A stretch of 27,218 nt of DNA from contig NIVC01000724.1 in NCBI GenBank assembly GCA_002269645.1, forward strand, positions 1 to 27,218. The letters are read 5' to 3'. The translations under genes were made by a program, and so were the position numbers. This document shows, piece by piece, positions 1-27,087 of this stretch. The notes beneath the pieces are model-generated. The model was not told the DNA's origin, did not search any database, and worked only from the letters and a program-made list of their open reading frames with translations. The stretch comes from Macrostomum lignano. Taxonomy: Eukaryota. The first letter of the stretch is position 1, and each line of letters begins with the position of its first letter.

Positions 1-12422
<12,422 letters not shown>

Positions 12423-13216: not shown

Positions 13217-13691
<475 letters not shown>

Positions 13692-14384: not shown

Positions 14385-15110
14385 TCCACCATCTCTCCCT
14401 CTCCATTTTCTCTCTTCCTCTCTTCCCTCTCTCCCACTCTCCCACTCTCCACTTCTCTCCCACTCTCCCCCTCTCCACCTCTCTCCCACTCTCCCCCTCT
14501 CCACCTCTCTCCCACTCTCCCCCTCTCCACCTCTCTCCCACTCTCCCCCTCTCCACCTCTCTCCCACTCTCCCCCTCTCCACCTCTCTCCCACTCTCCCC
14601 TCTCCACCTCTCTCCCACTCTCCCCCTCTCCACCTCTCTCCCACTCTCCCCCTCTCCACCTCTCTCCCACTCTCCCCCTCTCCACCTCTCTCCCACTCTC
14701 CCCCTCTCCACCTCTCTCCCACTCTCCCCCTCTCCACCTCTCTCCCACTCTCCCCCTCTCCACCTCTCTCCCACTCTCCCCCTCTCCACCTCTCTCCCAC
14801 TCTCCCCCTCTCCACCTCTCTCCCACTCTCCCCCTCTCCACCTCTCTCCCACTCTCCCCCTCTCCACCTCTCTCCCACTCTCCCCCTCTCCACCTCTCTC
14901 CCACTCTCCACCTCTCTCCCACTCTCTACCTCTCTCCCACTCTCCCCCTCTCTCCCACTCTCCAACTCTCTCCCTCTCTCCTACTCTCCCACTCTCCCAC
15001 TCTCCTCCTGTCTCCCACTCTTCCACTCTCCCACTCTCCCCTCTCCCCTCTCCCCCACTCTTTTTCTACCTAGTCTTCCTATCTCTTCCTCTTAGCTCTC
15101 TGCCTCACTC
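14385..15110. repeat. 26-bp polypyrimidine-rich minisatellite (CTCTCCCACTCTCCCCCTCTCCACCT) with CT-rich degenerate flanks
   Basis: cactctcc recurs at 14461, 14487 and 14513. Confidence 0.95.
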
Positions 15111-15769: not shown

Positions 15770-16730
15770 TATATCTGTCTAATTGTTTGTCTAAGTGTCT
15801 GTCTAGTGTCTTTCTAAGTGTATTAATGTCTGCCTTGGTGCCTCTCTCAGTGTCTAAGGGTGCTAGTGTCTGTCTTAATGTCTGTCTTAGTGCCTGTCTT
15901 AGTGTCTGTATTAGTGTCTGTCTTAGTGCCTGTCTTAGTGTCCGCCTCAATGTCTGTTCTAATGTCTCAGTGTCTGTCTTAGTACCTTTTATGTCTTAGT
16001 GTCTTTCTAAGGGTCTGTCTTAGTGTCTTTCTAAGTGTCTGTCTAAGTGTCTGTCTCAGTGTCTGTCTCAGTGTCTTTCTAAGTGTCTGTCTCAGTGTCT
16101 GTCTCAGTGTCTGTCTCAGTGTCTGTCTCAGTGCCTGTCTCAGTGCCTGTCTCAGTGCCTGTCTCAGTGCCTGTCTCAGTGTCTGTCTCAGTGTCTGCCT
16201 GTCTCAGTGCCTGTCTCAGTGCCTGTCTCAGTGCCTGTCTCAGTGCCTGTCTCAGTGCCTGTCTCAGTGCCTGTCTCAGTGCCTGTCTCAGTGTCTGTCT
16301 CAGTGTCTGCCTGTCTCAGTGCCTGTCTCAGTGCCTGTCTCAGTGTCTGCCTGTCTCAGTGCCTGTCTCAGTGCCTGTCTCAGTGCCTGTCTCAGTGCCT
16401 GTCTCAGTGTCTGTCTCAGTGTCTGCCTGTCTCAGTGCCTGTCTCAGTGCCTGTCTCAGTGCCTGTCTCAGTGCCTGTCTCAGTGTCTGTCTCAGTGTCT
16501 GCCTGTCTCAGTGCCTGTCTCAGTGCCTGTCTCAGTGTCTGCCTGTCTCAGTGCCTGTCTCAGTGCCTGTCTCAGTGCCTGTCTCAGTGCCTGTCTCAGT
16601 GCCTGTCTCAGTGTCTGTCTCAGTGTCTGCCTGTCTCAGTGCCTGTCTCAGTGCCTGTCTCAGTGCCTGTCTCAGTGCCTGTCTCAGTGCCTGTCTCAGT
16701 GCCTGTCTCAGTGCCTGTCTCAGTGTCTTT
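15770..16730. repeat. 12-bp minisatellite (GTCTCAGTGYCT, with 16-bp variants); degenerate on the left and homogeneous on the right
   Basis: Seen directly; starts about 15 bp beyond the iGluR stop codon. Confidence 0.97.
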
Positions 16731-16745
16731 CTGTCTATCAGCCTG

Positions 16746-17016: not shown

Positions 17017-20000
17017 CTGCAGGTTTTTTGGGGGGCTCGCTTTCGCTCTTCCAGAAGAAGTACAAGTAATTGGTAAGCCCTAATTACCGAAATCGACTTC
17101 CCTAATTCCCCCTAATCGACTTCCCTAATTCCCCCTAATCGACTTCCCTAATTCCCCCTAATCGACTTCCCTGATTCTCCCTAATCGACTTCCCTATTCC
17201 ACCCTAATCGACTTCCCTGATTCCCCCTAATCGACTTCCCTGATTCCCCCTAATCGACTTCCCTGATTGCCCCTAATCGACTTCCCTGATTCCCCCTAAT
17301 CGACTCCCTAATTCCCCCTAATCGACTCCCTAATTTCCCCTAATCGACTTCCCTAATCCACCCTAATCGACTTCCCTAATTCCCCTAATCGACTTCCCTG
17401 ATTTCCCCTAATCGACTTCCCTAATTCCCCGAATCGACTTCCCTAATTTCCCTTAATCGACTAATCGACTTTCCCAATTTCCCACTCGTCTCATCAATTC
17501 TCCTGCACGAGCTCCCCTATTATCGCTCTCACTGGAAGTCCATCAGTTCTGAGTACACAGCATCCTCAGGGTACATATAGGCTAGGCTGGCCCTGTTGAA
17601 CTGCTCCTTGGCCAGGTAGAACTCTGAGCAGCTGCGACTAGCAAAGACCATCAAGAAGGTGTAGTCTCCGATGCAGGCTCGCTCCTTTGATTCCATCTGT
17701 GAGAAAAATTTCATTGATTTTTTGTTGGATTTAACAGAGATTACTGCATCGGATAGCTGAAAGTGCTAGAAATCCGAAGACTTGGAGAATCCCATATAAG
17801 AGTCTGAGTTTTTGGAGTATTTCATCACTGAGATCATGAGAGTCTCAACATTGAGATCACGAGAGTCCAAACATTGAGATAATGAGAATCTCAACGTCTC
17901 ACTGGTGAGCTCATGAGAATCTCAGAACTGAGATCATGAGAATATCAGAACTGAAATCATGAGAATCTCAACATTGAGATCATGAGAGCTCAACATTGAG
18001 ATCACGAGAGTCTAAACATTGAGATAATGAGAATCTTAACAGCTCACTGGTGAGCTCATGAGAATCTCAATGGTGTGATAATGAGAATCTCAAGGGTGAG
18101 ATCGTGAGAATCTCACAACTGAGATCATGAGAATTTCAGAACTGAGATCATGAGAACTTCAAGCGTGAGATCATGAGAATCTCAGAACTGAGATCATGAG
18201 AATCTCAACGTCTCACTGGTGAGATCATGAGAATCTCAACATCTTACTGGTGTGATCGCAACACGAGACCATGAGAATCTCAACACTGAGACCGAGAATC
18301 TCAACTTTGTTGACTTTCATCATGTTTAGTTTCTATAAAACAAAACAGCGATCTCACCTCATCCATGCATTTCCGACCAGACTCTACCGGTATCACGGTA
18401 TCGCCGACCTGCTTGTAAACGCCAGATTTTGCTTCCTTAAATAGCGAGTGAGAATTCGTATCGACAATGACCATCGGCTTGATGGCGGACTGAGCCACCA
18501 GCTCATCCAGGGTCTCGATTGACTTGGCCACGGTGTTTACAGTCAGGTGTGACGTTAAATCAGCTGCAGATGAATTTGCAGATATTATAATACTTTCAAA
18601 TCACTGATAGCTCATCCTCAGATGTAATCATTCCCGTGTACACCCCAAAGCATAGATAACTCATTCCCGTGTACACCCCAAAGCATAGATAACTCATTCT
18701 CATGTACACTCCAAAGCATAGATAACTCATTCCCGTGTACACCCCAAAGCATAGATAACTCATTCCCGTGTACACCCCAAAGCATAGGTAACTCATTCCC
18801 GTGTACACTCCAAAGCATAGATAACTCATTCTCGTGTACACTCCAAAGCATAGATAGCTCAAACCCGTGTACACCCCAAACCATAGATAGCTTAAACCCA
18901 TGTACACCCCAAACAATACAGTGTAGATAATTCCTCTGTGTACATTTCAAACCATAGATAATTCCTCCGTGTACACCCCAAACCATAGATAATTCCTACG
19001 TGTACACCCCAAACCATAGATAATTCATTCCGTGTACACCCCAAACCATAGATAGCTCAAACGCGTGTTCACCCCAAACCATAGAATACACCCAATACCC
19101 ATTCCAATAACCCCTCAGCTCATGAATTCATCCGCTTTCTCACCCCTCACGATCTCAAGTCTTACCCGTGAAAGCGCAGTAGATAATCACGGTAAATATC
19201 CACCAGAAAGCCATGGCAGTCCGGGCAGACACAGCGAATGGATAGAAGTCCTGGCCTTGCTGCATAAAACTGCCAATCGCACTCCACAGATACTCCTGCA
19301 GCCAGACCTCGTCGGCGATAGAAAACTCAAGACCGAGATTGTACGCCGAGAATGGAGAGAAATAAGCAAAAAACCAGACGGAGATTGCGCAAAACGCAAT
19401 GGACGCTACTAACAGTAGCCAGATTAGGATGCCAAATGATTGAAAGGCATTCCACAGTCGGGGCGGCGGCCGCGGCCGAGGCAGCATCATACCGGTCGAC
19501 TCCTCCATCAGTGGCACCGAGAATTCAATCACCGTTTGCCGAGCAGCCGTCATCGTGAAGTGCCCGGCGGCCAGGGTCACAAGCTGCAACAGTGACACAG
19601 CTACCTAAACTCCAGGTCAGGCTACAGAACACCCCAGACCCCCTGCAGACTACTCACGCCTTTCTGCAGCTCTCCAACACAGCCGGAAAAGATGCTTGAG
19701 TTCGGCAGTGGAGCGCCCCATTTATTGTCGTCAGAACGTTTCGCAATGAAACTTGAGGAGATGGATATTTTGCATGGATTTTGTATTGATGAGGTAGCCT
19801 CAATTCTTAGTTTTTGGTCAACAGATACCTGAGCGACACCGTACACACTCCATGAGCAGCCAGTCTCTGACCGACACCGCACACACTCCATGAGCAGCCA
19901 GTCTCTGACCGACACCGCACACACTCCATGAGCAGCCAGTCTCTGACCGACACCGCGCGCACTCCATGAGCAGCCAGTCTCTGACCGACACCGCGCGCAC

Positions 20001-23000
20001 TCCATGAGCAGTCAGCCCCCGCCAACACTTACCGGAAGTCCATTTTCTCAGCCAGCATGTTTAGCACGGATGCTGTGAAGCCAGAAAATTTGGCGCTGCT
20101 GTCCTACAAAGAGTATTTTTGCGGTTTGGCGGCGTGAATATTGACACAACGTTAAAATTTATTTCTCTCAGCAACACCCGACTTACCGCAGGTGCCTCGG
20201 GTGCGCAAATGGTGATGGTCTCGTTCTTGAAGCCCAGAAAGGTGTTGGGGAAGACCAGCTGCTCAGACCGGTAGCTGAACAGTTTGCTCAGCTCACCGCT
20301 GGACACGTCGAACGCGGCTGATCGAAGGAACTCCAGCGGTGAGGACTTCAACTTGTTGTAAGAAGCGACCAGCTCTAGACCCTGCGAGTCGAGGTGTCTG
20401 GTGCTGGCGTTGAAGGACGTCCGACCTTTCAGCTGTGAAATGGTGAACAGGTATGAGTAGGTATTTGACTCGACTATTCAGTCCTGGTAATCTAGCGAAG
20501 CTTCAATCTATATAGCTCAGTTGGCTCACAGCGATCAGTTTAGTCATCACGGAGCTACCGTTGCTCCAGGGTTGCAGAGGCAGACAGGAGGCATTGCTGG
20601 GCTGGAATCCGGGCAACAGCAGCGACTGGTTCAGCGCGGCAGCCACAGCTTCCACAGCCTCAACGAATCGAACGTCCAGGGTCTGCGGATCAAGTCAAGC
20701 TCGCATTTTTACTAAATTTGCGCAAAGTCAACAATTGATCTCTAAGACTTAGAGAATGATACATCATTCACATCTTTAAGCCTCAAACACTTTTGCATCT
20801 TAAAACAAAATTTGTCCTGACGCTTTTTATCTTTAGGAAATCCTTTCATCCTTGACGCACGCGTTTCGACACTCCTGTTCACATCATGTGCCGTTGAAAA
20901 CTACGGAAACTGTTGGCATTCGGGTTCTTGACACTTTCAACTTCAGTGTTACGAGCTGCATCATGTTACTTAATATACCAAATAATGTGACCTGTTGGGC
21001 CGTTGGCGACACCAGCTGGCAGGCAACATCATCCGCACCGAGTCGTACATGTACTGCCCACAGCGTGGTGCAGTAGGTGCTGCTGCTGAGGATCTCACAT
21101 CCTTGATGCAATCCTCAGACACTGCTGTATCTCACACCCTTGATGCAATCCTCAGACACTGCTGCACCTCACATCCTTGATGCAATCCTCAGACATTACT
21201 GCATCTCACATCCTTGATGCAATCCTCAGACATTACTGCATCTCACATCCTTGATGCAATCTTCAGACATTACTGCATCTCACATCCTTGATGCAATCCT
21301 CAGACATTACTGCATCTCACATCCTTGATGCAATCCTCAGACACTGCTGCATCCATAACGTCCATTGCCATCTCGAGTCCTTACTCCCAGCTCACCCGCA
21401 AGCTCCGGCCGTCTCCAACTTCAAGCAGGTCCGTGCAGGCGGTTGAGCACTCGGCCGTGGCTCCTCTGAGCAGCGCCACATTGGCGCCAGCCGAGGCGGC
21501 CAGCGAAGCCGCCAGCGGGCCCGTGGAGAGGCCGCCGCCGTCCAGCAGCAGCCAGAAATAATTCTGCCCGAGCACCGCCGCGTCGGCCGCACGTCGCAGC
21601 GTTTCGATCGCGTTGGCCGGCGTTGCCAATAGCAACAGACGGCGGACTCGCTTGCGGACGAGGCTGCGCAGACGCGACGTCAGGTTGGAGGAGGCCGTAG
21701 CTGTTGAGTCGAGCTGCAGGGCGAAGCTGCCGACTCCAACTCGAGACAGGCGGGACTGCAGCCGCTCCAGCACTGGCTGACCTAATGTTTCATAAAATAA
21801 AGCATAAATTCAGCGTCATATTTTTACTGCTAAATAATTGGCTTCATATACTGAATCTCAACTCTGCTCCCTATCGAAGAGAATCGCGGCCTGGCTGTTC
21901 CGCGATGAGCTGCCAGTGCCAGCTGACTGGATGGCCGCCACGGCTGCCGAGATGAAGTCCCGACTTGAATGCATGCCGAACAGGACAGAACTGCCGTCTG
22001 AAGTGTGAGAAAGTCTGTTGATAGCTAATAATGTCTTTTGGAGTCAGTCGAAATCTCTTGTAAGCATCGACAGCGTTTCGCAAAAAATCAAAGGAATCAG
22101 CTTTTAAAAATTTGACTAATGGCCCTTCTAGATTTCTGGATATCACTGTAATCAGTGGAGCTAAGCTTAGAGTAAAGTATTAGATTTCTAATATATCAAA
22201 CAGTCTTTCACTTCGAAATCAGAGAATCTCCCCCTGAAATTTAAGAATCTCACCTTGAAATTTGAGAATCTCACCTCGAAATCCGAGAATATCACCTCGA
22301 AATCTAAGAATCTCACCTTGCAATTTAAGAATCTCACCTTAAAACCTAAGAATCCCACCTCGAAATCTAAGAATATCACCTTTAAATCTTAGAATCTCAC
22401 CTCGAAATCTATTATTCCTACCTCACATCTTATATTAGAATTATCTAGAATCTTAAATTTTAAAAAGACTCCCCCAAAAAGTCTCAAAGAGGCTCTCTAG
22501 TAGGTGGCTCACCAGTCCAGTCGCACCCCAGCTCGGAGGGCAGGGCCAGCAGAGGCACCCGCAAAGACTCGGCCAGGGGAGTCACCTGCCTGAGCAGGCG
22601 ACAACGGCCGGTGGCAATAATTGCTGAGAGATTCCGCTCGCTGCACACTGTGAGGTTGAAAATGTGTCTTTGTACATACTATGGACATGTACTGTCTATG
22701 GACACAAGCTGTACCGCCTGTGGACATAAGCTGTACTGTCTATAGACACGGACTGTATTGTCTATGGACACAAAATGGACACAAACTGTACTGTCTGTGA
22801 ACACAAACTGTACTGTCATTAGACAAACTGTGCTGTCTGTAGACACAAGCTGTACTGTCGATGGACACAAGTTGTACCGTTTATAGACACAAACTGCACT
22901 GTCTGTCGACACAAACTGCACTGTGTATAGGCAAAAACTGCGCTGTTAGTAGACACAAACTGGACGCATACTGGACTGTCTATAGACACAAACTGTACTG

Positions 23001-23821
23001 TGTGTAGACACAAACTGTACTGCCTATGGACACAAAATGGTCACAAGCTGTACTGTCTATGGACACAAATGGTCACAAACTGTACTGTCTATGGACACAA
23101 AATGGTCACAAACTGTACTTTTCTATGGACACAAAATGGTCACAAACTGTACTGTCTATGGACACAAATGGTCACAAACTGTACTGTCTATGGACACAAA
23201 ATGGTCACAAACTGTACTGTCTATGGACACAAAATGGTCACAAACTGTATTGTCTATGGACACAAAATGGTCACAAACTGTACTGTCTATGGACACAAAT
23301 GGTCACAAACTGTACTGTCTATGGACACAAATGGTCACAAACTGTACTGTCTATGGACACAAAATGGTCACAAACTGTACTGTCTATGGACACAAAATGG
23401 TCACAAACTGTACTGTCTATGGACACAAAATGGTCACAAACTGTACTGTCTATGGACACAAATGGTCACAAACTGTACTGTCTATGGACACAAATGGTCA
23501 CAAACTGTACTGTCTATGGACACAAAATGGTCACAAACTGTACTGTCTATGGACACAAATGGTCACAAACTGCACTGCCCATCACTCACACGCTCTCGCA
23601 GCCTCCAGACCATCACTAGTTCGCACAATGACCGCAGTCATTGTATGACCCGCCAGCACTCTCCAGTTATTGCTGATCCGCAGTCGAAGTGTCAGGTTGA
23701 TTAAAGAATCGCTCAGCAGGTCGGCCTCAGTCACCACAGCAATCTTCAGCAGCAGGCTGCAGCTGGGATTAAAACTCAGACCCAGTAAGAGAATCAAGGA
23801 AAGTCCTGTGAAACCTGGCAT
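16746..23821 (-). CDS. ionotropic glutamate receptor-family subunit with ATD (divergent, AMPA/kainate-like pore), 12 exons, 836 aa
   Basis: Exons 23821-23590, 22647-22513, 21997-21863, 21781-21396, 20682-20530, 20432-20187, 20103-20033, 19751-19658, 19583-19166, 18563-18358, 17696-17533 and 17016-16746 sum to 2511 nt, with all phases compatible and all introns GT-AG. Motifs: signal peptide, ATD, S1 GHFTMTAARQTVIEFSVPL, M1, FSPF, pore LWSAIGSFMQQG, M3, S2 with both conserved Cys, M4 and a short tail. Confidence 0.93.
17080..17480. repeat. 23-bp minisatellite CCCCCTAATCGACTTCCCTAATT, about 17 copies (iGluR intron 11)
   Basis: Period of 23; two CCCTAA hexamers per canonical unit. Confidence 0.95.
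17533..17696 (-). CDS. iGluR exon 11 (S2, RACIGDYTFL...RSCSEF...)
   Basis: cacag| ... |GTGAGA; 164 nt, phase 0-2. Confidence 0.88.
17826..18310. repeat. degenerate minisatellite of about 23 bp, TGAGATCATGAGAATCTCAGAAC (iGluR intron 10)
   Basis: gagatc at 18121 and 18144; variable insertions between units. Confidence 0.9.
18358..18563 (-). CDS. iGluR exon 10 (M3 end and S2 start, ADLTSHLTVNTVAKSIETLDELVAQ...)
   Basis: tgcag| ... |GTGAGA; 206 nt, phase 1-0; fits the pattern LT...PI.S.EDL..Q. Confidence 0.9.
18625..19085. repeat. 33-bp minisatellite GTGTACACCCCAAAGCATAGATAACTCATTCCC, about 14 copies (iGluR intron 9)
   Basis: 11-aa periodicity (FGVYTGMSYLC) in the track ORF. Confidence 0.95.
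19166..19583 (-). CDS. iGluR exon 9 (S1 end, M1, pore loop, start of M3)
   Basis: tgcag| ... |GTAAGA; 418 nt, phase 0-1; contains TAARQTVIEFS, FSPF, LWSAIGSFMQQG and RTAMAFWWIF. Confidence 0.95.
19658..19751 (-). CDS. iGluR exon 8 (DDNKWGAPLPNSSIFSGCVGELQKG)
   Basis: caag| ... |GTGAGT; 94 nt, phase 2-0; fits the S1 pattern DG.YG...WNGMVGEL. Confidence 0.87.
19835..20012. repeat. 38-bp minisatellite, about 4.7 copies (iGluR intron 7)
   Basis: cagtctc at 19861 and 19899. Confidence 0.95.
20033..20103 (-). CDS. iGluR exon 7 (DSSAKFSGFTASVLNMLAEKMDF)
   Basis: tgtag| ... |GTAAGT; 71 nt, phase 0-2; fits the S1 pattern F.GF..DLL..LA..L.F. Confidence 0.87.
20187..20432 (-). CDS. iGluR exon 6 (ATD end to S1 start, ...FKNETITICAPEAPA)
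   Basis: cacag| ... |GTAAGT; 246 nt, phase 0-0. Confidence 0.87.
20530..20682 (-). CDS. iGluR exon 5 (TLDVRFVEAVEAVAAAL...SCLPLQPWSNGSSVM)
   Basis: cgcag| ... |GTGAGC; 153 nt, phase 0-0; fits the ATD pattern DAV..A.AL...C....PW..G. Confidence 0.85.
21090..21352. repeat. 37-bp minisatellite, about 7 copies (iGluR intron 4)
   Basis: tgcaatc at 21181 and 21218. Confidence 0.95.
21396..21781 (-). CDS. iGluR exon 4 (ATD lower lobe, ...RRLLLLAT...VLGQNYFWLL...)
   Basis: ttag| ... |GTGAGC; 386 nt, phase 1-0; overlaps track ORF 21381..21773. Confidence 0.85.
21863..21997 (-). CDS. iGluR exon 3 (DGSSVLFGMHSSRDFISAAVAAI...AAILFDREQ)
   Basis: cttcag| acceptor; 135 nt, phase 1-1; ILFD matches the ATD ILYD motif. 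The donor GTTGAG is weak. Confidence 0.7.
22212..22410. repeat. 21-bp minisatellite GAATCTCACCTYGAAATYTAA, about 9 copies (iGluR intron 2)
   Basis: Period of 21 (22266, 22287, 22308). Confidence 0.9.
22513..22647 (-). CDS. iGluR exon 2 (LCSERNLSAIIATGRC...LRVPLLAL...)
   Basis: cacag| ... |GTGAGC, 135 nt, phase 1-1; fits the ATD pattern C..GV.AI.G...L.IP. Confidence 0.82.
22660..23575. repeat. compound minisatellite: degenerate 22-bp units grading into homogeneous 32/33-bp units TATGGACACAAA(A)TGGTCACAAACTGTACTGTC (iGluR intron 1)
   Basis: Seen directly; 11-aa periodicity (MVTNCTVYGHK) in the track ORF. Confidence 0.95.
23590..23821 (-). CDS. iGluR exon 1: signal peptide and ATD start (MPGFTGLSLILLLGLSF...)
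   Basis: ATG at 23821, hydrophobic leader, donor GTGAGT, phase 1. Confidence 0.8.
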
Positions 23822-24215
23822 TCTTTTTGGTGATAAGAAATCTTCAAATAATTTCTTCCGCGAATCTATGTCTTTTATATAAAAATGAGAGAAGGCATTT
23901 TCACCTGTTATTGATTTATTGAAGTTAAAAGTTAATAGCTTAATTCTGATTTATTGGCATTGGCAAAGCTCTCTTTCGCCTTACAGACTTTTATTGAATT
24001 ACTTTTTCCTGAAAAAGCATTGAGGGACATGATAAAAGCTTTTAGTTCCACGTGTAATATTGATTTCATTTTTGGTTTGATAAATGCATTTACTTTTACC
24101 GATTAAGTGAACTGACTTAATGGAAATTCGACATTAAGCTAGGACTGATGACAAGCTTCGGATAATTTTCGAAAAACAGCAATATATCGATGTCTTTTAG
24201 CCCAAGAAAGGGGAT

Positions 24216-24660
24216 GTCAACTTAAGCACCAGAATGGAGCCCGAAGTTCAGCTCCGGACCAAACCGACTGCAATCGATAACTTGTCGGCCCAGACGACTA
24301 GAATCGCCGAGACATCCCATCCGGGTCCCTTCCTTGGGGTCCCAGGGGATAAAGGGGATAAAATGGGGATCTCATGTCAACTTAAGCACCAGAATGGAGC
24401 CCGAAGTTCAGCTCCGGACCAAACCGACTGCAATCGATAACTTGTTGGCCCAGACGACTAGAATCGCCGAGACATCCCATCCGGGTCCCTTCCTTGGGGT
24501 CCCAGGGGATAAAGGGGATAAAATGGGGATCTCATGTCAACTTAAGGCTCTGGAATGGAGCCCGAAGTTCAGCTCCGGCCCAAACCGACTGAAATCGATA
24601 ACTTGTCGGCCCAGACGACTAGAATCGCCGAGACATCCCATCCGGCTCCCTTCCTTGGGG
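24216..24660 (+). repeat. 160-bp tandem array, left inverted arm
   Basis: GTCAAC unit starts at 24216, 24376 and 24536. Confidence 0.95.
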
Positions 24661-25545
24661 TGACTGAAACTCCTCTTGCTGGCCGCTAGACTGTTGCTCA
24701 GTAGGCTTCCGCTGCTGTGGTAAAGCATTTTCTCTGGCATAAAGTCTGGCAACAAGGCTGCGTGGAACTTCCAGCTTCCAGCTTTTGCTGATGAGTAGTA
24801 GCCACGAAGAAGTTGCAATCCAGGATCTCTAAAACCAAAGCGATTGTCCGCTGCTGTCACACACTCTAAGAATCACGCGTAGGATTTCGAATTATGGCGC
24901 GAGAAAACGACAGCTAGTAAAATCAAAACGGATGCCACCGACCGAATAGGTTGCTCCAGTTTTCTAACGGCGTCTCTTGCCGAATCTTCCAACACTCCCG
25001 GCGGCTCGGATGTGTAACTCAAAGTCTCTCCAGGAGTCACCTTCGTAGCTACCGAGAACCTCCTTGACACGAATGTTTTGAATGTAATAATCAGCTTGAT
25101 TTAGTTGATACGGACCCACCGAAACCTCTGACAAATTCACTGTGTGAATTCGGGGAACCCCGAGCTTTTTGGATCCAGCGGGTTGACGGCAATCCATGCC
25201 CTTGTGTTAGCAGGGGGGCACGCTTCAGATCACAGTTGAAGTGCAGCTGCTCAATTTCGTCCAGTTCGTTGGACAAGAGCACTCGGCGCATGAAATTCTG
25301 ACCGAATTCGAACAACGATAGCCCTGTCCATGACGGTGGAGCTGTTTAAATGATTCAAAACCTGGATGCGCCCGGTTGTACTTTGCCATCGAGGTCTCGA
25401 TAACAACGTCTAATCGGCTGGGCTTACTGAAGCCGGCTGACGCAGCCACTGATACGGTTTGTGCCTCTCGTTAACACATTAGTCCTGCTTAATGGCAGCA
25501 AAGCAGCACATAGCGGAACATAGTGGCACAGCGGATGTCTCTGCG
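24661..25545 (-). pseudogene. decayed transposase C-terminal fragment (likely DDE_Tnp_4 / PHIS-type, with a degenerate SWIM-like end)
   Basis: Frameshifted fragments occur in colinear order: RDIRCATMFRYV, FMRRVLLSNEL, WIAVNPLDPKSSGFPEFT, LSEVSVGPYQLNQADYY, VFSRHNSKSYA, LRGYYSSAKAG. They resemble the pattern SR.VT..RWVVE...W..ID..FP.LT...L..G.YQLKQA.SY...I.SRH...Y...GWYC.CK.G that I recall from invertebrate DDE+SWIM transposon proteins. Recognised by eye and needs HMM confirmation. Confidence 0.55.
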
Positions 25546-26283
25546 ATTCTTGTCGTCTGGGCCGACAAGTTATCGATTGCAGTCGATTTGGGCCGGAGCT
25601 GAACTTCGGGCTCCATTCCAGAGCCTTAAGTTGACATGAGATCCCCATTTTATCCCCTTTATCCCCTGGGACCCCAAGGAAGGGACCCGGATGGGATGTC
25701 TCGGCGATTCTAGTCGTCTGGGCCGACAAGTTATCGATTGCAGTCGGTTTGGTCCGGAGCTGAACTTCGGGCTCCATTCTGGTGCTTAAGTTGACATGAG
25801 ATCCCCATTTTATCCCCTTTATCCCCTGGGACCCCAAGGAAGGGACCCGGATGGGATGTCTCGGCGATTCTAGTCGTCTGGGCCGACAAGTTATCGATTT
25901 CAGTCGGTTTGGGCCGGAGCTGAACTTCGGGCTCCATTCCAGAGCCTTAAGTTGACATGAGATCCCCATTTTATCCCCTTTATTCCCGGACCCCAAGGAA
26001 GGGACCCGGATGGGATGTCTCGGCGATTCTAGTCGTCTGGGCCGACAAGTTATCGATTGCAGTCGGTTTGGTCCGGAGCTGAACTTCGGGCTCCATTCCA
26101 GAGCCTTAAGTTGACATGAGATCCCCATTTTATCCCCTTTATTCCCTGGGACCCCAAGGAAGGGACCCGGATGGGATGTCTCGGCGATTCTAGTCGTCTG
26201 GGCCGACAAGTTATCGATTGCAGTCGGTTTGGTCCGGAGCTGAACTTCGGGCTCCATTCTGGTGCTTAAGTTGACATTCCCTT
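25533..26283 (-). repeat. 159-161-bp tandem array, right inverted arm
   Basis: GTTGAC at 25630, 25790, 25951, 26110 and 26270; reverse complement of the left-arm unit. Confidence 0.95.
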
Positions 26284-26379
26284 CAAGAAATTCTGCGACC
26301 GTCCCAGAAATGCACAAAATCTTGTGGTCTTCAGTGCCAGTCTTTATTGATCTTGTGGCTTCGAACTTTACATAAAAAA

Positions 26380-27020
26380 TCTCCCGGATGTCACTTGTCT
26401 GGGGTCTTCATGACGTCACATGTCTGGGGACTTCAGGATGTCACATGTTATAGGTCATCAGGACGTCACATGTCTGGGGTCTTCAGGACGTCACATGTCT
26501 GGGGTCTTCAGGACGTCACATGTCTGGAGTCTTCAGGACGTCACATGTCTGGGGTCTTCAGGATGTCACTTGTCTGGGGTCTTCATGACGTCACATATCT
26601 AGGGTCTTCAGGACGTCACATGTCTGGGGACTTCAGGATGTCACATGTTATAGGTCTTCAGGACGTCACATGTCTGGGGTCTTCAGGACGTCACATGTCT
26701 GGAGTCTTCAGGACGTCACATGTCTGGGGTCTTCAGGACGTCACATGTCTGGGGTCTTCAGGACGTCACATGTCTGGGGTCTTCAGGACGTCATATGTCT
26801 GGGGTCTTCAAGACGTCACATGTCTGAGGTCTTCAGGACGTCACTTGTCTGGGGACTTCAGGATGTCACATGTTATAGGGTCTTCAGGATGTCACATGTC
26901 TGGGGTCTTCAGGACGCCTCATGTCTGGGGTCTTCAGGATGTCACATGTCTAGGGTCTTCAGGACGTCGCATGTCTAGGGTATTCAGGCGTTAGGACATC
27001 TTGGGGTCTTCAGGATGTCA
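26380..27020. repeat. 25-bp minisatellite GGACGTCACATGTCTGGGGTCTTCA, about 25 copies
   Basis: ggacg at 26461 and 26486. Confidence 0.97.
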
Positions 27021-27087
27021 CATATTGACCCTTCATCTTAATTTGATTCTTTGATCGGGTAAGTCCTTGAATTTCTTAAGCTCATTG

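Follow-up and report, generated by a model that had tools for sequence, protein, structure and literature searches.

The window analysed here is the whole 27,218-nucleotide stretch of contig NIVC01000724.1, and its right-hand part carries a repetitive element in which two inverted arrays of a 160-bp unit enclose a decayed fragment of a DDE_Tnp_4-like transposase gene. The element has a well-defined anatomy, is homologous through its middle to transposases, exists in multiple copies, and has termini that are conserved in relatives of the enclosed gene. A preliminary description of this DNA had reported inverted 160-bp arrays around about 870 bp of decayed coding sequence and likened them to Foldback-type elements, with long, internally repetitive and unequal terminal inverted repeats (TIRs) around a non-functional middle; Tandem Repeats Finder (TRF), a repeat finder and splitting of the arrays in register bear out this architecture together with the copy numbers and the exact termini that it quoted. 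To these can be added a pentamer, CAAGA, immediately outside both ends, and a division of the units into two subtypes.

According to TRF, the left array (24214-24661) has a period of 160 bp, 2.8 copies and 96% matches, and the right array (25533-26277) a period of 161 bp, 4.7 copies and 95% matches. The two arms, 454 nt on the left and 751 nt on the right, are 98-100% complementary overall, with the repeat finder reporting inverted arms of 407 nt at 24232-24638/25533-25939 (98% complementary) and outer arms of 179 nt at 24208-24386/26105-26283 (99% complementary). When both arrays are split in register at GTCAACTTAAG, the left arm reads as the prefix AAGGGGAT followed by units of types A, A and B, and the right arm, from the outside, as the prefix AAGGGAAT followed by A, B, B, A and B, the last B being cut short in each (at about 126 nt on the left and 103 nt on the right). 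The main difference between the subtypes lies in the 12 nt that follow GTCAACTTAAG. Unit V1 of the left arm is the same as U4 of the right (0 differences) and V3 differs from U3 at one site, as compared with 6-9 sites between A and B types, and these similarities point to unequal exchange or conversion that is still under way, both inside each arm and from one arm to the other. The arms could pair in single-stranded DNA, their complementarity making possible a stem of about 410-450 bp, in agreement with the stem of about 450 bp predicted earlier. A single unit has no unusual fold (z = -0.6), Rfam returned no matches across the whole window, and no further copies of the 160-bp unit or of the core are present elsewhere in the window.

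The two ends of the element are alike in a way that the interior is not. AAGGGRATGTCAACTTAAG forms the outer end of both arrays, and the outer ends of the element stop at AAGGGRATGTCAAC, with the array starting 8 nt from the element end. Internal unit junctions, represented by GGGGATCTCATGTCAACTTAAG, all read ...AAAGGGGATAAAATGGGGATCTCAT|GTCAAC, whereas both outer ends read AAGGGRAT|GTCAAC, without the 16 nt (AAAATGGGGATCTCAT) found at every internal junction. Because the same 16-nt-shorter form occurs at both ends, the termini are specific, and not arbitrary breakpoints in a satellite. Every unit opens with GTCAACTTAAG preceded by GGGGAT(CTCAT), a near-copy of the end sequence, and there are eight such near-copies in the two arms together.

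The core is a minus-strand gene fragment in at least three frames with several stops, and its identity as a transposase relic, as initially suggested, is supported by alignment with the C-terminal part of P0002, an intact 560-residue protein encoded on a 3-kb JGI (Joint Genome Institute) metagenome contig, L001. A stitched minus-strand translation of the core matches P0002 (E 2.9e-30) and, more strongly, the gene model P0001 described below (E 5.9e-57); in tblastn, residues ~362-560 of P0002 align with 25533->24959, spread over three frames and interrupted by stops; and two further sequences, L002 (from Logan) and L003, have 72% and 69% nucleotide identity to window positions 25153-25530 and 24770-25533, respectively. 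The relic starts at 25533 with R-C-A-T-M-F-R-Y and extends to a C-terminal Cys/His-motif region near 24720-24770, the ~60-110 nt beside the left arm lying outside the assigned part. P0020 and a profile alignment indicate that the ancestral open reading frame (ORF) ran past the P0002 stop, and ETPLENWSNLFGRW and NRFGFRDPGLQLLRGYY...FHAALL in the window match conserved columns leading into the Cys/His (SWIM-like) motif. Since the alignment continues into columns past that stop, nearly all of the 871 bp is decayed internal gene sequence, corresponding to a longer protein from its E motif as far as residue ~640.

The window core is without two thirds of the gene and has multiple frameshifts and stops. 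Both catalytic D regions are deleted, and an 8-nt deletion relative to both L002 and L003 falls exactly over the V-V-E codons of RCATMFRYVVECCFAAIKQ and thereby removes the catalytic glutamate codon. With the DDE triad lost, the window copy is a relic and not an active gene. No second ORF of the Myb/SANT-like or YqaJ kind is present in the window element. The clade to which P0002 belongs and its canonical DDE_Tnp_4 neighbours have in common a C-terminal motif, W.C..C..G.R..GCC.HV, with the look of a SWIM-type zinc finger; at window ~24720-24800 (minus strand) the residues around it are kept (NRFGFRDPGLQLLRGYY...FHAALL) and the cysteines are lost. Homology of the 160-bp unit to transposase codons upstream of the junction was considered and is not significant (p ~0.02-0.08), and a weak tblastn match of P0002 at 11231-11440 (E 0.005) was not reproduced with other family members and is treated as chance.

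Placement of the core in a superfamily depends on its relatives. A six-frame Pfam scan of the core alone (24640-25560) gave no match, because the relic is short and heavily decayed, and it was P0002 alone that revealed what it is. P0002 itself gives matches to a C2H2 finger, to HTH_Tnp_4 (E 2e-4) and to DDE_Tnp_4 (E 0.011), all below Pfam cut-offs and in the order expected of a PIF/Harbinger-type transposase. A search of 1.84 billion proteins at E <= 1e-3 yields 105 representatives of its clade, and the long members have invariant D197 (xxDxTY), D291/G293 (DxGY), and R368 and E372 (RxxVE) in P0002 numbering. In 20 clade members, Pfam finds DDE_Tnp_4 in three (best 8.6e-8), HTH_Tnp_4 in six and a C-terminal UCH/USP domain in four; HTH_Tnp_4 scores 33.5 bits in L002, and in an outer shell of weaker matches DDE_Tnp_4 is found in 16 of 25 proteins (best 7.5e-22). 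An hhalign comparison of the clade profile with canonical DDE_Tnp_4 proteins, with P0002 left out of the second profile, aligned 462 columns at a probability of 100% and E 2.9e-47. Membership of the PHIS superfamily has been defined by a transposase alignable over the catalytic region at E < 1e-4 (PMC4482050), and with the value obtained the core can be assigned through its relatives to PHIS (DDE_Tnp_4; IS5/PIF-Harbinger-like). The PHIS/DDE_Tnp_4 type first proposed thus holds at superfamily level through these relatives and does not extend to a domain match in the core itself. The clade is rare, divergent and poorly covered by Pfam. A search of P0002 against NCBIfam and PDB sequences gave zinc-finger matches only, a PDB profile search with the clade matched only the USP domains of long members, and a further named-protein search with alignment A3 was saturated, giving three self-matches.

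L001 has one called gene only. A distant relative, L004, has an upstream ORF of 580 residues (202-1944) with C2H2 fingers only. We note that distant members of about 1040-1075 residues (P0128, encoded at L004:2008-5154, and P0004-P0009) carry the USP/UCH domain at the C-terminus (Pfam E 5.8e-13), and no description of a USP-transposase fusion was found in the literature searched. Downstream of both L004 genes lies a ~102-bp tandem array of 5-6 copies (L004:5832-6346), and from this array subterminal tandem repeats may recur in the transposase clade. No clean TIRs or target-site duplications (TSDs) could be defined at the ends of the distant marine relatives L004-L009.

Other copies of the element are found in public gene models. 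A 297-residue ORF through the right array, used as query, gave one match, P0001, a Macrostomum lignano gene model (UniRef A0A1I8IYQ6) in which residues 62-251 run from a B-type unit through the relic into an inverted unit, with both array/core junctions and ~95% identity; nothing in the window corresponds to its first 61 or its last 83 residues. A chimeric model of 2393 residues, P0014, passes from one and a half units across the same right junction into the relic, which has decayed less in one place, where RDFEFTSELPSRLECWKF is continuous and the window has a frameshift. The shared array/core junctions in P0001 and P0014 indicate a multi-copy family and argue strongly against misassembly, and together with the recurrence of the terminal motif at the ends of L001 and L079 they strengthen the earlier view of a mobile family whose copies have termini in common. 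The reading AVPLCSAMCCFAAIKQ, found in both models, is possible only with the same 8-nt deletion in each, and since this deletion and the junctions are common to the copies, truncation and deletion predate the spread of the non-autonomous family. The stops and frameshifts peculiar to the window copy arose later than that spread.

The same models point to an annotation hazard, in that public gene models of M. lignano take in copies of the element as exons. The splice points used are the AG inside GTCAACTTAAG|G and the GT in CAAG|GT of the unit, and one model is named 'DUF3480 domain-containing protein', a name that no Pfam match backs. Coordinates of the features of the window element are collected in Table 1.

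Table 1. Features of the element and its immediate flanks, in window coordinates.
Feature	Position	Strand	Basis
Left arm: terminal prefix and 160-bp units V1, V2 and V3	24208..24661	+	TRF, repeat finder, in-register splitting
Unit V1, type A	24216-24375	+	
Unit V2, type A	24376-24535	+	
Unit V3, type B, cut at ~126 nt	24536-24661	+	
Core: decayed internal fragment of a DDE_Tnp_4-like transposase gene (871 bp)	24662..25532	-	tblastn, nucleotide alignments, hhalign columns
Right arm, outer to inner: terminal prefix and units U1-U5	25533..26283	-	TRF, repeat finder, in-register splitting
Unit U1, type A	26275-26116	-	
Unit U2, type B	26115-25957	-	
Unit U3, type B	25956-25796	-	
Unit U4, type A	25795-25636	-	
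Unit U5, type B, cut at ~103 nt	25635-25533	-	
Left outer terminus, AAGGGGATGTCAACTTAAG; 3' end relative to the relic gene	24208..24226	+	matches right terminus, L001 5' end and L079 3' end
Right outer terminus, AAGGGAATGTCAACTTAAG on the minus strand; 5' end relative to the relic gene	26265..26283	-	
CAAGA adjoining the left end; candidate 5-bp target-site duplication	24203..24207	.	read from sequence
CAAGA adjoining the right end; second copy of the candidate target-site duplication	26284..26288	.	read from sequence

The end sequence recurs beside relatives of the enclosed gene. In L001, AAGAGGATGTCAACTTAGG precedes the intact P0002 gene by ~800 bp and has the same orientation as the right arm of the window element relative to its relic. 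L079, from the same metagenome sample as L001, carries a deleted relic with the inverted motif ~900 bp downstream, and its match to the window terminus (40 nt, 82.5% identity, E 2.6e-5) is stronger than that of L001. Read from the outside in, the four ends conform to AAG[G/A/T]G[G/A]ATGTCAACT[T/G]A[A/G]G..TGGA.CCC.AAG, and this terminal motif is the presumed recognition sequence of the transposase. There are no tandem arrays at the ends of L001 and L079, and those of the window element are therefore a derived state, reached in its own lineage by expansion of the terminal ~160 bp. L079 is also flanked by minisatellites (1-67 and 2002-2092). A resemblance between the 25-bp minisatellite beside the window element and the L001 5' region was rejected as chance (E 1.2).

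The exact boundary of the TIR determines the length of the repeat that flanks it. If the TIR starts at AAGGG, CAAGA (5 bp) is present on both flanks; if it starts one base earlier (A or G), the flanking repeat is AAG (3 bp; left copy 24204-24206). A 5-bp match at a fixed boundary is expected by chance about once in 1000 cases, and less than once in 100 with a few alternative boundaries. A 2-bp AT duplication, as would be ISL2EU-like with a TIR from GTCAAC, can be excluded, AAGNGGAT upstream of GTCAAC being conserved in L001 and L079.

We consider it very likely that the element is a non-autonomous deletion derivative of a cut-and-paste PHIS transposon (IS5/PIF-Harbinger-like, DDE_Tnp_4) of M. 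lignano or a close relative. Its ancestor would have combined simple ends, opening with AAGNGRATGTCAACTTARG, with a gene encoding a C2H2/HTH_Tnp_4/DDE transposase; this gene then would have lost its first ~360 codons and its 3' part, with the 8-nt deletion taking the catalytic glutamate codon, and the terminal ~160 bp would have been amplified in tandem within both arms. An element of this kind could not be expected to move alone, and would be moved, now or formerly, in trans by a full-length relative whose transposase may bind the terminal motif; the repeated units, by analogy with Galileo and Tetris, might then provide extra subterminal binding sites. Galileo TIR repeats carry secondary transposase-binding sites according to the account in PMC4079207, which cites Marzo et al. 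2008 and 2013, and in Tetris of Drosophila virilis the TIR repeats derive from duplication of the outer TIR domain, with TIR-220 repeats also seeding satellite arrays (PMC4079207). Unequal recombination, slippage or abortive gap repair may alter the lengths of the arrays and carry variants from one arm to the other, and such exchange would explain the 2.8 versus 4.7 units, the mixed order of A and B types, and the units that are identical across arms. Inner cut points at 103 and 126 nt would fit deletions by abortive gap repair, a process proposed for Medicago elements with subterminal variable number tandem repeats (VNTRs) (PMC2213677). The inverted arms are a likely source of local instability. 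The predicted pre-insertion site is ...TTTTAGCCCAAGAAATTCTGCGACC... with one CAAGA.

Several points weigh against derivation from a PHIS transposon of this kind. No intact autonomous copy from the same genome came to light in the collections searched, which do not include that genome, and the closest intact gene, that of P0002, is only ~34% identical and comes from a metagenome. The match of the L001 end is 17/18, and treated as an arbitrary 18-mer anywhere in the window it has an E value of 0.076 and is equalled in about 6 of 30 shuffles; it carries weight because it falls exactly on the element ends, in the expected place and orientation, a position fixed beforehand. CAAGA or AAG as a TSD is a candidate only, coming from the one copy with both flanks, and neither fits any of the TSD types of the six PHIS groups, namely TWA, AT, none, ANT, CWG and C|TNA|G (PMC4482050). 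We infer, and only infer, both the binding of the terminal motif by a relative's transposase and the benefit of the repeated units. Lastly, and oddly, the terminal 17-mer is also found at the ends of unrelated prokaryotic IS6 elements.

This sharing of ends emerged from a scan of metagenome contigs for AGRGRATGTCAACTTARG, which returned 69 loci (L010-L078), about the number expected by chance. At least 25 of the 69 are real element ends, and several families begin exactly at (A)GAGGATGTCAACTTAAG with unrelated flanks. Prokaryotic IS6-family elements from environmental metagenomes (among them L015, L018, L021, L058 and L071) have the TIR GAGGATGTCAACTTAAG, which is identical to the window ends at 16-17 of 17 positions; L058 includes, at 8134-8370 of its reverse complement, a miniature inverted-repeat transposable element of ~230 bp with an 8-bp TSD (ATTCACCA). 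The IS6 elements differ from the window element in their DDE_Tnp_IS240 transposase (present in L018), their prokaryotic hosts and their 8-bp TSD. No protein similarity is detectable between the IS6 transposases and the P0002 clade and no IS240-type sequence is present in the window; the element is not of the IS6 family, and the terminal 17-mer alone is common to the two.

Three other explanations for the locus can be weighed against the deletion-derivative reading. Long reads are known to give rise, as an artefact, to inverted duplications that surround a short unique centre, and repeats are extremely abundant in the region (27 kb with 56 TRF rows), such that a palindromic chimera, or a satellite array collapsed or inverted in long-read assembly, has to be considered. 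The arms are not mirror images, however, reading A-A-B and A-B-B-A-B with different inner cut points, the flanks outside are different minisatellites (a 33-bp unit at 23009-23577 and a 25-bp unit at 26386-27023), and the independent model P0001, with other exons, has the same order of unit, relic and inverted unit with both junctions at ~95% identity, the right junction being repeated in P0014; an assembly artefact is accordingly highly improbable. The differences in arm length and unit order, and the inner junctions at different unit positions (103 versus 126 nt), would also suit an origin in two separate events, in which an ordinary 160-bp satellite was partly inverted, or two satellite-bearing elements inserted head to head, around an unrelated transposase pseudogene. 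We regard this as unlikely, as both outer ends share the specialised terminal form and the flanking pentamer, the end motif is that of relatives (L001, L079) of the very gene enclosed, and the arrangement recurs in other copies with identical junctions.

The remaining explanation is that the element is fixed and immobile and is kept for a host function, whether as a regulatory module, as a hairpin source of small RNAs or Piwi-interacting RNAs, or as a boundary element upstream of or within the neighbouring ionotropic glutamate receptor (iGluR)-like gene. Arms that are 98-100% identical could yield long double-stranded RNA if transcribed, the inclusion of copies as exons in models P0001 and P0014 may reflect transcription, and iGluR-like exons lie on the minus strand ~2.4 kb from the element. 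Against this, no conservation is seen beyond what recent copying explains, and the copies carry private frameshifts and stops, as expected under neutral decay, leaving a retained host function only a slight chance of being correct.

The window as a whole is eukaryotic and extremely rich in mini- and microsatellites (56 TRF rows). There is a perfect (TAGA)118 at 13217-13690 and a (GACA)56 at 4345-4569, and some 15 further arrays include those at 491-1074, 14412-15061, 15865-16732, 17091-17462, 18628-19085, 21092-21353, 23009-23577 and 26386-27023. Many are minisatellites with units of 21-38 bp, and several of these show a higher-order period as well (at 491-1074, units of 22 bp inside one of 175 bp); the minisatellites with 33-bp and 25-bp units lie within ~630 bp and ~100 bp, respectively, of the two ends of the element. 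Candidate exons of an iGluR-like gene at 19155-19598 and 21381-21773, both on the minus strand, were picked out by eye from translations, which look like a ligand-binding/pore region and an N-terminal receptor domain; about 2.4 kb separates them from the element, on their 5' side.

The element clearly illustrates, outside insects and plants, the idea that foldback architecture arises independently in different transposon lineages by transposase loss and TIR elongation, and its parent lineage can be named because a piece of the gene is still inside and relatives with simple ends are available for comparison. It also offers a starting point for annotating the largely unclassified repeats of M. 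lignano, a regeneration model with a hard-to-assemble genome, in which long inverted arrays of this kind probably play a part in rearrangements and in breaks in the assembly. For specialists in transposons, the fusions with a USP domain and the end motif held in common with IS6 are worth pursuing. A broader proposal would make the element the representative of an undescribed PHIS group, with a C2H2, HTH_Tnp_4, DDE and SWIM-like transposase that is sometimes fused to USP, a 5-bp TSD unlike those of the listed groups, ends in common with prokaryotic IS6, recent activity in Macrostomum, and arrayed ends that seed 160-bp satellites; taken jointly, these propositions seem doubtful. The suggestion in the preliminary description that this may be an undescribed family is plausible for the transposase clade, and does not carry over to the architecture, which is known already, even within PIF/Harbinger (PMC2213677).

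Comparison with known systems places the element among several partial counterparts. The Foldback (FB), Galileo (P superfamily) and Tetris elements of Drosophila similarly have long TIRs made of tandem repeats of a terminal domain, with unequal arms and a middle domain of little or no coding capacity. They differ in their P-like or Mutator-like lineage and 7-10-bp TSD, as against the DDE_Tnp_4-like relic and 5- or 3-bp flanking repeat seen here, where the host is a flatworm and the repeat unit begins right at the end of the element; in the way it works the element resembles a foldback element, but it is outside the FB, Galileo and Tetris lineages. Of the same superfamily in a broad sense is the PIF/Harbinger element MtPH-A6-4 of Medicago truncatula with its 60-bp VNTRs (PMC2213677), which differs in its plant host, its 60-bp unit, a 14-bp TIR that is apart from the VNTR, and a canonical 3-bp TTA/TAA duplication, whereas the transposase clade described here is far from canonical PIF/Harbinger and some of its members have the SWIM-like motif and a USP domain. 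The PHIS groups (PIF/Harbinger, ISL2EU, Spy, Pangu, NuwaI and NuwaII) are alike in having HTH_Tnp_4 and DDE_Tnp_4 with D..D..E in the same motif context, and a second upstream ORF occurs in the distant relative L004 as well; by comparison, flanks of CAAGA or AAG are unlisted among them, no Myb/SANT or YqaJ partner ORF is seen, with ORF1 of L004 carrying C2H2 fingers instead, and some clade members are fused to a UCH/USP domain. No description of such an element in Macrostomum was found in the literature searched. The architecture is known, from Foldback, Galileo, Tetris and Medicago MtPH-A6-4, and what is new is its occurrence in a flatworm host, with a rare and divergent transposase clade, an array that comes within 8 nt of the end, and an atypical flanking repeat.

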